Below, one piece after another: positions 9,298-19,934 of a DNA stretch of 64,000 bases. The DNA is taken from assembly GCA_037447605.1 (NCBI GenBank), contig CM074804.1, positions 8,533,909-8,597,908 of the forward strand, read 5' to 3'. The stretch comes from Zygnema circumcarinatum SAG 698-1b. Its lineage: Eukaryota; Plantae; Zygnematophyceae. Below the pieces are notes generated by a model, which was not told where the DNA came from, did no database searches, and saw only the letters and a list, made by a program, of their open reading frames with translations. The position numbers and the translations under genes are program-made. Numbering within the stretch: the first letter of the stretch is position 1; every line of letters begins with the position of its first letter.

Positions 9298-12200
9298 ATG
9301 GCCGCCGCCGCAGCCATATGGGCTGTCGCCCTCCTCTCTGTCCCCGCTCTCGCGCTCCGGCTGGGCCCCACCTTCCTCCCCGTGGCCGGCCAGCTTGGGA
9401 GGCCTCTCCACGTGGAGCCGTTCAGCCCCTCCCCAAACAACAAGTCCGGCAGCGACTTCGGCGGCGCGGCCCTCCTGGAGCCGCTCTATGGGGCGTACTT
9501 CGGCGTGACGTACAACAACTCCGTGCCGCTGGAGGACTACTTCGACTACATCGGCTTCCGCCCCGCCTCCATCGGAGTGTTCAGCCTCTTCCCCCTCACG
9601 ACGGAGAGCGTGAAGAACCTTCGGCGCATTCTCAAGCAGGTGAACACAAAGCGCCTTCTAACATGCTGACATGAACCCTCCGATCTCCTTCTTTGCAGAT
9701 CCGCACAGATTAGGGCTTTGGTTTGAGCGGGAAGCGGCGGGGCGGGCGGCGCAGGTGGCCCAAGTGGGCGGCGCGGCGGTCCTGACCTTGGAGCCGTACA
9801 GCGGGCTCGCCTCCGTCTCGGAGAAGGCGTGCCGCCAGCTGGTCGACTTTCTCATTCCGTACGAAACCATGGGAGTCTCCTTCTTCCTCCGCTTCGGCCA
9901 CGAAATGAATGGCGCCTGGTCAGCTTCGCACGCCCTCCCTCGTTGCTGCCATCGTTCTCTCTCGCGCGCTTGTGCTCCAAAAAACTAACTTGCTAGATGG
10001 AGGTTTGAACTGAACTTTTACTATTTGGGAACGGGGTGGCACGTGCGTGCAGGTATCCGTGGTGCCAAAAGCCCACTTTGTACAAGGAGAAGTTCCGCAT
10101 GCTGGCGGACTACGTGCAGAAGTTCACGTGCAGGACGGCGATGCTTTGGGCCCCGAACAATGGCGGCGGGTACCCCTTCGCGGGCGCGCACGGCTGCTCG
10201 CGGCTCTTCTGTTCGGACTTCGCCGTCCTCGACACGGACGGGGACGGAGAGCTGACCATGGCGGACGACATGTACACGCCGTACTACCCGGGGGACGACG
10301 TCGTGGACTGGGTCGGCATGACGATGTACCATTGGGGCCGCAAGTCGCCGTGGGGGAACAACACAGTTCCCGAACCGGATGCTTACTGGGAAAGGGTGTG
10401 TGCCTGCCCAAGTCCTCTGCCTTTTCTTCTTCTTCTTCTTCTTCTACTTCTTCTTGTCCTCCTCACTACCCCTTTCTGTCGGTGTCTCTCCCCTCCTCTC
10501 CTACGCACGCATACGCACGCGGGGTGTTATGATTTGTGTGTCTTATGGGCGCAGCTGACGGGGAACTACGACGGCGAGAACGGCAACGAGACGGCGGTGG
10601 CGGACTTCTACGCGCTCTTCTGCGCGGACGAGACGCGCCGCAAACCACTCGCGATCCCGGAGGTGGGGGCGATGTGGAACCCCAAAGCGACCTGCTGCGA
10701 GGACGAACTCACCGTCAAGCAGGCGTGGTGGTCCCAGGTCTGCGTACATTCCCTCTCGCGCGCTCTCTCTCTCTCTCTCTCTCTCTCTCTCTCTCTCTCT
10801 CTCTCTCTCTCTCTCTCTCTCTCTCTCTCTCTCTCTCTCTCTCTCTCTCTCTCTCTCTCTCTCTCTCTCTCTCTCTCTCTCTACTCTCTCTCTCTCTCTC
10901 TCTCTCTCTCTCTCTCTCTCTCTCTCTCTCTCTCTCTCTCTCTCTCTCTCTCTCTCTCTCTCTCTCTCTCTCTCTCTCTCTCTCTCTCTCTCTCTCTCTC
11001 TCTCTCTCTCTCTCTCTCTCTCTCTCTCTCTCTCTCTCTCTCTCTCTCTCTCTCTCTCTCTCTCTCTCTCTCTCTCTCTCTCTCTCTCTCTCTCTCTCTC
11101 TCTCTCTCTCTCTCTCTCTCTCTCTCTCTCTCTCTCTCTCTCTCTCTCTCTCTCTCTCTCTCTCTCTCTCTCTCTCTCTCTCTCTCTCTCTCTCTCTCTC
11201 TCTCTCTCGCTCTCGTGTCCTTGTCCACTTCAGAGCTGCTCATTCTCACTTTCCTTCATTCTGACCTTCCCCTGTTTTCTCATCCCATCCCTGGACGGAT
11301 GCAACTTGGGCCCTCTCAAGGACACGTGTCCGTTCAGTCTCCAAAGACCGTCCTCCACGTGGCGGTGCTGCTCCGATCCACGCTCGAAAGCTGCCACTGT
11401 TGAGCCCTAACGTAGTGCACCGCGGGGGGCGTGACACGTGGCAGGTGTTCAGCCTCGAAGGAGACAAGCCCGGTGCGCGGGACGTGTCGAAATGGCTCCC
11501 GCGGCTCAAGATGGTCGCGTGGTTCGACGAGCGCAAAGCCGAGGTGAGGGCCCCAAAAGGGCTCAGAACCCCTCTGCCCTGCCCTGCCCCGCCCTCCCTT
11601 TTCACTCCAACGACAAGTTGTTCGGGGAGAGGGTCGCTTGTCGGAGTATGGGCTATTCCTACAAGAAGTTGTTTTGATCGAGTTCACGCCAGGCAGGAGG
11701 CATTCCTAGTGGGTGATTGAAACTCCGTACATAGAAAAGTTTTTAGGGTTTTTAGGGGTTTTTTTTTTTTGCATCTTTTCTTGAAGTCCCACCTACGATT
11801 TTCCTCCTTCCTCGTTTGTTTCCAACCTTTCTCAACCTCTCTGTCGGTCAGGAGTGAGATTTTTTCCGCTTTAGTTGCAGCCTTGCACATCCTTGTCGCG
11901 CGTTTGCTCAGTTGTTGCATGCAGTTAGTTGCCTAGGAGGAGAAGTCGTTGCACATGTGCATGGCTGACAAGTTGCATGGAAACGACCGGAGGGTCATGG
12001 AGGACCTATCTCGTCCCGGCACTTAGGACCATCTCAGGTGCTGGGAAGGGAGACGGGGAAGGCTATGAGGCATAAGAGGCAGACCAGTTCGGGGAGGGGG
12101 GAGGGACCTGGGGTCGGGCGTTCTAGGGGAGGCAGTGTAGATGGGCGGTAGCCGAGGCCGAAGGGGGAGGAGGTGAAGGCCGGCGGGCGGGGGCCCTGCG

Positions 12201-12470
12201 CGGAGCAGGAGGAGGTGCGCGGCGCGGTGGCGGACTGGACCTTCTCGCGGTCGGCGCGCGTACGGACCGCCTTCCGGCGCGGCCTGCGGCTGCAGGTACG
12301 GCCGCCTGCAGCCGCAGGCGCGGGAGGGGGGTCGGGCCGGTGGTGACTGTACCTGTCTGTCTGCCTGCTGGGCCCGCTGGCAGGGCGCGCTACCCGCGGG
12401 GGTGGTGGACTGGACCTTCTCCGCCGACGAGGCCGTGCGCGGGGCCTTCCGCCGCGCGCTGCTCCGCCAG
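9298..12470 (+). other. Glycoside hydrolase family 26-like domain with N-terminal signal peptide
   Basis: Signal peptide [33 protein letters not shown] (acid/base Glu, motif completed across a phase-2 intron), [21 protein letters not shown] (nucleophile Glu position), WFDERK...DWTF. Confidence 0.88.
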
Positions 12471-18400: not shown

Positions 18401-19934
18401 TCTGGTGGTGGTGATGGCCCCCGTCGCATACATGTTCTTTGAGGCAGGGCCCATCTCCGCGCGCGTGGAGGAGTTCTGCCTCTTCTTCTTCCTGTACTAC
18501 GCGAGCAACCGCGCAATGCTGTGGGCGGCGCACCGCGGCGTGCCCAACAAGGGGCTCGAAATGTGGCGGGGCTCGCAGGCATGGGTGTGGACAGCACCCA
18601 ACAATCTGCTCGCCTGTTGGAGGGTCTTCACCTCCGAGCTATGGCTATTCAAGATTCTCGGAGTCGGGGAGGTGGGGACACTCACTCAGGAGGGTGAAAA
18701 TGCTGGAATTTGGAGGGTTAAGGTTGCATTCATTGAAATTATGCTGTGCTCTTCGGCCATGGTTAAGGTCGGAAATTTGTTGAAAGATGTGAGTGATCTA
18801 CATGGACGGGTGTGTTGAAGCGGTGGCATGCATGTGGGGCCTTTGGACAGATCGGATTTGCAGTGACTAAGAAGGATGCAGAACGAGACTGGAGGGCAGC
18901 ACTGAGTGCCACGTGGGTGTACCTGCTCTACTATGTGCTCGTCGTAGCAGGAGCGATCCTCAACATCGTCCGCTTTTCTGTGGGTTACTACTCCACAGCC
19001 GACATGGTTGCACAGGTGAGTTCTCAAACCATTCTTGCCCACAACTGTCTCTCTCTCTCGAAAGGACCCCAAACAAGCTCTAGGGTGCAATGCCCCTCCC
19101 CCAGACCCCCCCTCCCTCTGTCGGAGCCATTAACCCTTTGGGGGGGGTGGTGGGCAGGGCGTGGCCTTGGCGTGGGGCTTGCTCATCTGCCTCTATCTAT
19201 GGCCGCCCGTGGCCGCGGTCCTCCCGTGGCAGCGCGCGCCCGCGGGGGGGAAGGTCGAGTGGGACGAGACGCCCGCGGAGCTCGCGGACGCATTCCACCG
19301 CGACCACGGTCGGCACTCTGCGCCCTGCCTGCTCTCGCTCGCGGACAGAGAGAGAGAAAGGGGGGGGGGGGTATGGGTGAAGGGGAAGGGCTGGGCGGGG
19401 AAGGGGGCAATTCTGAAGGAGAGGGAGGGCATGGCGGGGGGCAGGTCCTGCGGCGGAAGTGGAGAAGCAGATGCAGCAGGAGGTGGAGGCGGAGGTGCTG
19501 CCCGCCCCGCGCTGGAGGCGGCTCGTTAAAGCCCTGCGGGCAGCCATCTGGAAGCTCTTTGGCTGGTGAGGGTCGTGCATGTTGCCACCCTCCCCCTCTC
19601 CCCCTCCCCCTCCCCCTCCCCCTCCCCCTCCCCCCCTGACACGCAGGCACGGTGTGTGTTTTGGCGCAGGTCTTCCACGGAGGGGCGCATCGGCAGCTCG
19701 ATGCGCAGTCTGAGCGGCAGCGCGAGCCTCCTCTCCCGCCCGGAGTTCACCCTCATGCGGCGCGCGCGCGACAGCGGGACCTTCGCGCTCGTGAACGCGA
19801 CCACGCTCGCGCTCCTCCTCGCGGCGGGCCTCCTCTGCGCGCTGCTCCGCGCGGACCCCGTGCAGGCCCTCCTGCGCGCCGCCCTGCGCGCCTCCCTGGC
19901 GGCCATGGCGCGGACCCCTGCGAGCTCGCCCTGA
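9298..19934 (+). CDS. Putative single multidomain protein (~1,556 aa): signal peptide, GH26, beta-rich domain, TM, ankyrin repeats, BcsA-like GT2 glycan synthase
   Basis: Exons 9298-9639, 9755-9918, 10053-10395, 10555-10737, 11445-11543, (12209-12295 or 12384-12470), 13220-13307, 13599-13674, 13859-14041, 14365-14605, 14847-14951, 15083-15247, 15404-15946, 16281-16558, 16700-16856, 17003-17227, 17519-17729, 17860-17966, 18114-18194, 18381-18671, 18851-19015, 19158-19308, 19445-19565 and 19670-19934 all have GT-AG borders with matching phases and no internal stop (4,671 nt with one exon-6 variant). The weakest junction is 12470/13220. Confidence 0.72.
10763..11208. repeat. (CT)n microsatellite, ~445 bp, intronic
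   Basis: Almost pure ct dinucleotide with one interruption (ctact) near 10883. Confidence 0.98.
12573..12627. repeat. (GATG)n microsatellite, intronic
   Basis: atggatggatgg... run visible directly. Confidence 0.95.
14847..15470 (+). other. Ankyrin repeats (about 3)
   Basis: [74 protein letters not shown]. Confidence 0.92.
15900..19934 (+). other. Processive GT2 synthase, bacterial cellulose synthase (BcsA)-like
   Basis: Two N-terminal TM helices, then [45 protein letters not shown] and FAVTKK (FxVTxK gating loop), then further TM helices. No plant CESA P-CR/CSR-sized insertions and no PilZ domain are visible. Confidence 0.93.
17230..17482. repeat. (CCCTCT)n-type low-complexity tract, intronic
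   Basis: Imperfect hexamer repeat filling most of intron 17228-17518. Confidence 0.95.

Follow-up and report, generated by a model that had tools for sequence, protein, structure and literature searches.

A Zygnema gene for a candidate glycan synthase joined to its own GH26-like hydrolase

Results and Discussion

One Gene for a Candidate Synthase-Hydrolase

The stretch of the Zygnema circumcarinatum SAG 698-1b genome analysed here (64,000 nucleotides (nt), called the window) contains at 9298-19934 on the forward strand one expressed gene for a single polypeptide, in which a GH26-like hydrolase domain, one transmembrane (TM) helix, ankyrin repeats and a BcsA-like GT2 synthase domain follow one another. 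Its 23 exons sum to 4641 nt and encode 1546 amino acids (aa). Chance is not a realistic explanation for this arrangement, because independent homologues, 59-63% identical, align with the protein over its whole length. The best explanation, to which we give a probability of about 0.7, is a plasma-membrane glycan synthase with its own tethered hydrolase. The GT2 would polymerise a nucleotide sugar, most likely UDP-glucose, at the cytosolic face and push the beta-linked chain outward through its own TM channel. The GH26-like domain, a putative retaining endo-glycanase held outside by the single TM helix, would meet the emerging chain and cut, release or transglycosylate it, a role comparable to that of BcsZ or KORRIGAN for cellulose synthases. 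By fusion, two activities that are adjacent genes in bacteria would be kept in one place and in a 1:1 ratio. We infer that the hydrolase acts on the product of its own synthase and that the protein is located in the plasma membrane.

Gene Model and Transcripts

The exon model was assembled stepwise and its 3' end was completed by reference to a homologue. It has no internal stop, every intron is GT..AG and the stop codon ends at 19934. The original prediction, made from the letters of the window, had described an in-frame chain of 24 GT-AG exons. Its exons, domains and motifs were found where it had placed them and the in-frame chain stands, but the count is 23 here, the difference lying in the poorly constrained tail.

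Same-organism sequencing runs holding 0.44-0.61 of the words of the region were taken as RNA-like, and contigs from four such runs, belonging to four studies, were placed on 11262-17190. GT..AG joints were found in these contigs at 11543>12209, 12295>13220, 13674>13859, 14041>14365, 14605>14847, 14951>15083, 15946>16281, 16558>16700 and 16856>17003. The alternative joint 12470>13220 brings the RNA-supported junctions between 11543 and 17003 to ten. At the junction 10737>11445, a loose end at 11442, of 181-255 nt, reads as the end of exon 4 in 4/4 runs. The repeats 13304-13384 and 15326-15401 were skipped in read placement; introns 7 (13308-13598) and 12 (15248-15403), like the junctions 5' of 10737 and 3' of 17003, were defined by frame, GT-AG borders and collinearity with the homologues P0322 and P0382 described below. 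The last intron (19377-19646) is the least certain, its position being deduced.

Two genes, one for a membrane-anchored GH26-ankyrin protein and another for a separate GT2, could give a similar picture if they were joined by read-through or by the assembly of overlapping transcripts. The Logan contigs derive from short reads and there are minor unspliced contigs in introns 6 and 13, as such a model would allow. We nevertheless regard it as hardly credible. Contig depth is similar in the two parts (166-514 on the hydrolase side, 486-704 on the synthase side), and the joint between the linker and the GT2 (15943>16278) has a depth of 113-704 in 4/4 runs, on par with the exons next to it. Intron 13, which this joint removes, is found unspliced at a depth of 14-35 and spliced at 490-700. 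No stop codon separates the two parts, P0322 and P0382 are single open reading frames (ORFs), and every algal homologue has the ankyrins and the GT2 in one protein.

The single gene makes two forms of its hydrolase. Its two versions of exon 6 (6a and 6b) are tandem 87-nt duplicates and mutually exclusive: the contigs join 11541>12207 with 12290>13215 for exon 6a in three runs, and 11541>12382 with 12467>13217 for exon 6b in two. The end of the hydrolase barrel is encoded by exons 5 and 6; both versions of exon 6 supply its last segment, with the nearly invariant DW motif, so that the swap yields two hydrolase isoforms. The junction 12470/13220, proposed earlier as the place to test the model, is therefore spliced in RNA-like contigs as one of two alternatives, the other being 12295/13220. 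The 3' part of intron 6 (12632-13221) is covered by RNA-like contigs at ~10-20% of the depth of the spliced junctions, with loose ends at 12500, 12790 and 12796, which could reflect intron retention or a minor internal start.

A 2477-nt genomic contig of another alga (Logan SRR9302961, GC content 40%) carries exons 1-4 of an orthologue, 52-72% identical. Its four exon boundaries are those of the Zygnema gene, so intron positions in the hydrolase are conserved across genomes of very different GC content.

Algal Homologues

The architecture is found in three other algal sequences. P0322, from a 5.9-kb RNA-like contig, is one ORF of 1534 aa and shares 58.8% identity with Zygnema residues 58-1540; Pfam finds in it GH26 (20.8 bits), Ank_2 (53.9), Cellulose_synt (78) and Glyco_trans_2_3 (70). 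P0382, a 1725-aa Trinity transcript, is 63.3% identical and has the full architecture, and P0383, a gene model from Chlorokybus, also has both halves. P0322 surfaced when a long bacterial GH26-like protein served as the carrier of a region search; P0382 and P0383 came from a search with P0322. The possibility raised beforehand, that orthologues are always two genes, does not agree with P0322 and P0382, which are single ORFs on single transcripts, and the proposed check for the same architecture in other algae thus returned two transcripts and one gene model. The architecture had also been called unrecognised; we likewise found no description of it in the literature, although it is not restricted to the Zygnema gene and is present in public protein sets.

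The search with P0322 also recovered ~30 green-algal proteins with TM helix, ankyrins and GT2 but without GH26, from Klebsormidium, Micractinium, Nannochloris, Scenedesmus, Tetradesmus, Symbiochloris and Chlorella. From this distribution the ankyrin-GT2 core is a green-algal family, to which the hydrolase is fused in some streptophyte algae. Two other searches returned no such proteins. A metagenome scan with GT2 exon 16 gave five bacterial synthases (44-49% identity) and no algal transcript. Among the long hits of the search with the GH26 piece, 0/8 scanned with Pfam had a GT2, and none of the matches listed aligns past model residue 463.

Domain Layout and Topology

The features of the gene are collected in Table 1. 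Results for whole proteins from Pfam, the PDB and fold comparison come from the homologue P0322 or from single exons of the window.

Table 1: Features of the Zygnema gene (positions in the window).
Feature	Positions	Strand	Basis or remark
Start codon and predicted signal peptide	9298-9380	+	First ATG of the frame; hydropathy peak at residues 2-27
GH26-like (beta/alpha)8 hydrolase	9469-12295	+	Residues ~56-407, exons 1-6
Beta-rich second ectodomain module	13220-14479	+	Residues ~407-555; NIT at 13292, NET just downstream
Single TM helix, then RRR	14480-14533	+	Hydropathy 2.39
Three ankyrin repeats	14847-15480	+	Exons 11-13
Ser/Pro-rich low-complexity linker, predicted cytosolic	15481-15946	+	Direct sequence reading
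BcsA-like processive GT2 with TM helices	16281-19376	+	Motifs; exon-level PDB matches
C-terminal tail, including a further predicted TM helix (19788-19844), and stop	19647-19934	+	Collinear with the tails of P0322 and P0382
Exons 1-5	9298-9639, 9755-9918, 10053-10395, 10555-10737, 11445-11543	+	
Exons 6-10	12209-12295 (alternative 12384-12470), 13220-13307, 13599-13674, 13859-14041, 14365-14605	+	
Exons 11-15	14847-14951, 15083-15247, 15404-15946, 16281-16558, 16700-16856	+	
Exons 16-20	17003-17227, 17519-17729, 17860-17966, 18114-18194, 18381-18671	+	
Exons 21-23	18851-19015, 19158-19376, 19647-19934	+	

Signal or lipoprotein leaders are likewise found at the N-termini of P0322 and the bacterial relatives. 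Seven N-x-S/T sequons lie within residues 30-560, the predicted ectodomain, and its beta-rich module is homologous to the region that follows the barrel in the bacterial proteins P0001 and P0016, which align up to model residues 463-518. The three arginines after the TM helix fit the positive-inside rule, which would place the C-terminal side in the cytosol. The predicted topology, in which the GH26-like domain faces outward while ankyrins and GT2 lie in the cytosol, is self-consistent, and the earlier proposal of one polypeptide arranged in this way is supported.

The ankyrin assignment holds for exon 12 alone, where Pfam gives 46.5 bits for Ank PF00023 (cut-off 21.1), 37.9 for Ank_2 and 35.8 for Ank_4. 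The repeats are probably a docking site for cytosolic partners. No Pfam family was found in the Ser/Pro-rich linker. A degenerate PilZ domain in the C-terminal tail was considered and rejected: neither frame of the tail had any Pfam match, and no PilZ match was found in P0322.

A GH26-Like Hydrolase Nearest to a Lichenase

Both catalytic glutamates are present. The acid/base Glu lies in HEMNG (residues 163-167, 9899-9913), which aligns with HEANG of the lichenase CtLic26A, and is invariant in the family alignments A2 and A4 (E112 in A4). The nucleophile Glu, in IPEVGA (residues 317-322, 10654-10671), is nearly invariant in the family (ETAA in bacteria); it corresponds to Glu222 of CtLic26A by position only, HMMER having left that stretch unaligned. 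The domain is 41-49% identical to bacterial GH26-like proteins above the Pfam GH26 cut-off, and 859 relatives, with up to 58% identity, came from a library search with its GH26 piece. For the Pfam model PF02156 itself (cut-off 20.2), single exons of the window reach at most 12.1 bits, P0322 reaches the 20.8 given above, and the bacterial relatives have 28-41. From these comparisons the Zygnema domain appears to be a divergent GH26 subgroup.

The family profile matches CtLic26A (endoglucanase H of C. thermocellum) at E 4e-11 over most of its length, while it matches mannanases only around the HEMNG motif. An AlphaFold2 (AF2) model was made of residues 36-400 of P0322, a domain ~61% identical to that of Zygnema, with a predicted local distance difference test score (pLDDT) of 89.8. 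The first 33 matches of this model in Foldseek were all GH26. The closest structure was CtLic26A (E 9e-16, target TM-score (TMt) 0.77), next came the mixed-linkage xylanase AlXyn26A and then a beta-1,3-xylanase, and mannanases appeared later, at TMt ~0.55. With CtLic26A and AlXyn26A the family has in common the HE(M/A)NG motif, the YPGD..VD segment and the C-terminal DW motif; it differs from them by a long insertion with an EF-hand-like DTDGDG loop and by the extra beta-rich module. The loop lies at 10240-10275 in exon 3, within the barrel insertion, has a weak Pfam EF-hand_5 match and is conserved across the bacterial family as LDTNxDGxL. Judged by its sequence, it may be a calcium site.

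The ectodomain could instead be a non-catalytic glycan sensor that reports the status of the wall to the synthase via the TM helix and the ankyrins. A single-pass layout with a cytosolic protein-interaction module does resemble a receptor, and the alternative exons alter the last barrel segment. We consider this highly improbable, since both catalytic Glu and most invariant residues of the family are kept and the bacterial relatives are stand-alone secreted enzymes.

The GH26-like domain was also seen in other contexts. P0338, P0141, P0361 and ~30 other proteins have it in fusions, in Actinobacteria with OpgC_C and Acyl_transf_3 (~820 aa) and in Chloroflexi with a cytochrome c and a pyrroloquinoline quinone (PQQ) sugar dehydrogenase (~1000 aa). 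The OpgC and PQQ fusions are further undescribed extracytoplasmic glycan-handling architectures. Stand-alone GH26-like proteins occur in other eukaryotes, namely Gonapodya, the alga "Picre1" and a marine metatranscriptome. The Picre1 protein P0285 (EukProt jgi/Picre1/32075, 712 aa) is green-algal, has two tandem GH26-like domains and no synthase, and clusters in the tree with the domains of the fused algal proteins. It is a possible unfused partner for the chlorophyte ankyrin-GT2 proteins.

A BcsA-Like Synthase, Probably CslP

The GT2 domain carries YNEP (16488-16514), VLDDG (16728-16742), HAKAGN (17021-17038), FDCD (17102-17113), CVGTG (17618-17632), ITED (17687-17698), QRLRW (17934-17948) and FAVTKK (18857-18874), and VQTPQ is also present. 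All these motifs (D, DxD, TED and QxxRW, with HAKAGN and FxVTxK) line up with the bacterial synthases. Hydropathy peaks before the catalytic domain, including one at residues 897-915, and after it, at 1228-1246, 1345-1363 and 1382-1400, are collinear with BcsA-like sequences, and the helices presumably form a channel. The GT2 exons match consecutive parts of the GT2 Pfam profiles, and their PDB matches are to BcsA or plant CesA only. Single exons were too weak in Pfam for the assignment of GH26 and GT2, for which the full-length homologue was used. Against solved structures, the GT2 of P0322 scores 150 bits with Rhodobacter BcsA, 134 with E. coli BcsA, 61-83 with plant CesA and 36 with CslF6, and the Zygnema GT2 itself scores 323 bits against a hidden Markov model of the GH26-partnered bacterial synthases described below. 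A profile search headed by a BcsAB fusion was dominated by BcsAB proteins of sphingomonads. In agreement with the original prediction of a BcsA-like GT2, the protein is not a plant CESA or a land-plant CSL.

BcsA with BcsZ (GH8) and plant CESA with KORRIGAN (GH9) resemble the Zygnema protein in having a processive GT2 with the same motifs, its own TM channel and an extracytoplasmic endo-glycanase. The Zygnema hydrolase differs in being GH26-like, not GH8 or GH9, and in standing on the same polypeptide; ankyrins are added, PilZ is absent and BcsB was not seen.

A family of BcsA-like microalgal Csl proteins, CslP, with a mean length of 1474 aa, has been described in streptophyte and chlorophyte algae and is absent from land plants; a bacterial origin was proposed, with Cyanobacteria and Chloroflexi named as the closest bacteria (Feng et al. 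2024, PMC11096116, Supplementary Text). The Zygnema GT2 family is probably this CslP, an assignment made from the published description by length, taxon range and BcsA-likeness: both are long and BcsA-like and have the same algal range. It differs from that description in that, for the algal GT2 family, the actinobacterial GH26-partnered synthases outscore the sampled cyanobacterial CesAs. CslN was rejected as the name of the family, because CslN occurs in Zygnematophyceae only and has bacterial relatives with PleD, while the family recovered here is also in Klebsormidium, Chlorokybus and chlorophytes. Neither GH26 nor ankyrin is mentioned in the paper or its supplements, and we found no paper on a GH26-ankyrin-GT2 fusion or on a bacterial GT2/GH26-like gene pair.

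The Two Families as a Bacterial Gene Pair

One genome was scanned for each bacterial species, which gave 555 loci with the GH26-like family. In the best 80 of these, examined with 10-kb flanks, a homologue of the algal GT2 was found within 10 kb of the GH26-like gene in 31, and on the same strand in 26. Same-strand pairs are mostly <525 nt apart, occur in both gene orders and in one case have overlapping stop and start codons. The pair is present in Actinomycetota, Chloroflexota, Bacillota, Myxococcota and Pseudomonadota, as in Sporolactobacillus (L003), a member of the Chloroflexia (L014) and Arthrobacter (L067), and on two further metagenome contigs (L090 and L093). The paired bacterial GT2s have 615-750 aa and are 30-35% identical to the algal GT2, and for the hydrolases of such pairs the identity is 41-46%. 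On the CelA model TIGR03030 (cut-off 699), bacterial partner GT2s score 335-410 bits.

The bacterial pair has the same two families as the algal protein, with the hydrolase outside and the synthase inside. The differences are that the bacterial genes are separate or fused in the opposite order and that ankyrin repeats are absent. Two bacterial proteins, P0292 and P0330, combine both families in the order GT2-(PilZ)-TM-GH26, the TM helix of P0292 standing between PilZ and the hydrolase. The analogy drawn at the outset with BcsA and a separate glucanase is strengthened by these data, bacteria keeping these two families adjacent or fused.

The related suggestion that ankyrins replace c-di-GMP/PilZ control is not supported. 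Non-actinobacterial partner GT2s carry PilZ, but by Pfam the actinobacterial L067 has none, and in the alignment L067 and L048, also actinobacterial, end just past the last TM helix, so that the sister synthases of the algal family are already without PilZ. The ankyrin-GT2 core moreover occurs without GH26 in Klebsormidium and many chlorophytes, and gating by ankyrins is not indicated. An Actinoplanes Wzx/Wzy cluster with a GH26 enzyme was set aside as a different system.

Phylogeny and Origin

When eleven algal sequences are included, the GT2 tree recovers the ankyrin-GT2 family of the algae as one clade (100/100), whose sister group is formed by the GH26-partnered synthases of Actinobacteria (98/99). 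Another clade (99/99) unites E. coli BcsA with a BcsAB fusion, cyanobacterial CesA and BgsA. In BLAST, too, four algal GT2 domains score highest with those actinobacterial partner synthases. The Zygnema sequence alone takes the same place with weaker support, and it was the addition of ten algal homologues that resolved the placement. The algal GH26-like domains group together (92/93) within a 100/100 clade of Bacillota and metagenome sequences, apart from the actinobacterial hydrolases. Both halves thus show bacterial affinities in these trees, to families that travel together, and a horizontal, bacterial origin of the Zygnema synthase-hydrolase, raised as a possibility by the original prediction, is plausible, with the GT2 sister to actinobacterial synthases and the GH26-like domain inside a bacterial and metagenomic clade.

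Several results weigh against the proposed synthase with a tethered hydrolase, or against parts of it. Contigs built from short reads fall short of proving a single molecule across all 23 exons. Hydropathy was the only method used for the signal peptide and the topology. The fold model is that of the homologue P0322, not of the Zygnema protein, and the modelled domain is only 17-18% identical to CtLic26A, so product and specificity are guesses read from distant relatives. The Klebsormidium and chlorophyte proteins that have ankyrins and GT2 without GH26 indicate that the synthase can work without a fused hydrolase. As to the origin, an approximately unbiased (AU) test with the Zygnema GT2 alone did not reject its placement with BcsA/BgsA (p 0.186), and the GT2 and GH26-like trees point to different sampled donors, so a single operon transfer is not shown.

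The Likely Product

For the product of the proposed synthase we favour a beta-glucan, possibly mixed-linkage. A mixed-linkage beta-1,3;1,4-glucan is a tentative suggestion, drawn from the modelled fold and the sequence matches of the hydrolase. Such glucans and other non-cellulosic beta-glucans occur in streptophyte algae. To our knowledge the grass enzymes CslF, CslH and CslJ are absent from these algae, and we know of no algal synthase. Outside grasses, Tft1 of Aspergillus is a mixed-linkage glucan synthase. Another is RiGT2/Cgs of Romboutsia, a BcsA-like protein of ~600 aa that makes mixed-linkage glucan without BcsB (PMC10374906) and in this resembles the bacterial partner GT2s found here, BcsA-like and without a BcsB partner. 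BgsA, the mixed-linkage glucan synthase of Sinorhizobium, differs in falling with the BcsA outgroup and not with the algal family.

The product could instead be plain cellulose or another beta-1,4-glucan, the GH26-like domain then being the BcsZ or KORRIGAN equivalent of this lineage, with no mixed-linkage chemistry. Of the solved structures, Rhodobacter and E. coli BcsA match the GT2 best, as the scores of P0322 above show, the bacterial partners do score on the CelA model, and a CesA function was suggested for BcsA-like algal Csl proteins (Feng et al. 2024, PMC11096116). The same partners are, however, far under the CelA equivalog cut-off, and the hydrolase resembles a lichenase and beta-1,3-acting GH26 enzymes, with no GH26 cellulase among its matches. 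RiGT2 is a precedent on the other side, for it is BcsA-like and makes mixed-linkage glucan, so BcsA-likeness does not fix the linkage. We therefore hold cellulose to be somewhat doubtful. For the non-cellulosic product of the original prediction the lichenase-like fold of the hydrolase gives a hint, and cellulose stays among the candidates.

Some other polymer, whether a beta-1,3 or mixed-linkage xylan, a beta-1,3-glucan or a mannan, is unlikely. Still less likely is one that is not a glucan at all, that is, a beta-1,3 or mixed-linkage xylan or a mannan, with UDP-xylose or GDP-mannose as the donor. The structures ranked second and third for the hydrolase are xylanases (AlXyn26A and the beta-1,3-xylanase), and mannanases are the majority of characterised GH26 enzymes. 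All close GT2 relatives of known product (BcsA, CesA) nevertheless use UDP-glucose, mannanases are among the more distant GH26 matches, and the GH26-like family is also fused to OpgC-type glucan-modifying domains.

A comparison for the proposed beta-glucan synthase with its hydrolase is offered by Ags1/Mok1, the fungal alpha-1,3-glucan synthase, in which an extracellular domain of a glycoside hydrolase family and an intracellular synthase are likewise joined across the membrane in one polypeptide. The families are unrelated (GH13 and GT5, making an alpha-glucan) and the likeness is an analogy only.

What is new here is the pairing of the bacterial GT2 and GH26-like genes, the actinobacterial sister group of the algal GT2 and a fold that is lichenase-like rather than mannanase-like. 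The Zygnema locus is a concrete, expressible candidate synthase, and its tethered hydrolase supplies a matched substrate test. The fusion serves as a Rosetta stone, tying together two uncharacterised bacterial families that are adjacent in soil Actinomycetota, Chloroflexota and Bacillota, and fusion and pairing together predict a new exopolysaccharide system. The gene shows how a eukaryote can swap operon coupling for gene fusion, a single TM helix preserving the logic of inside and outside; one bacterial fusion got there independently in the opposite domain order. A wider reading is doubtful, namely that this gene family, carrying its own lichenase or transglycosylase, is the missing mixed-linkage glucan synthase of the streptophyte algae, and that it also descended from the bacterial pair, itself a widespread undescribed mixed-linkage exopolysaccharide system of hundreds of species in at least five phyla.

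Repeat-Rich Introns

Introns 4 (10780-11250) and 16 (17230-17500) consist almost wholly of CT-rich microsatellite. Both are open in at least one frame, and mechanically called ORFs cross them as long SL or PL repeats.

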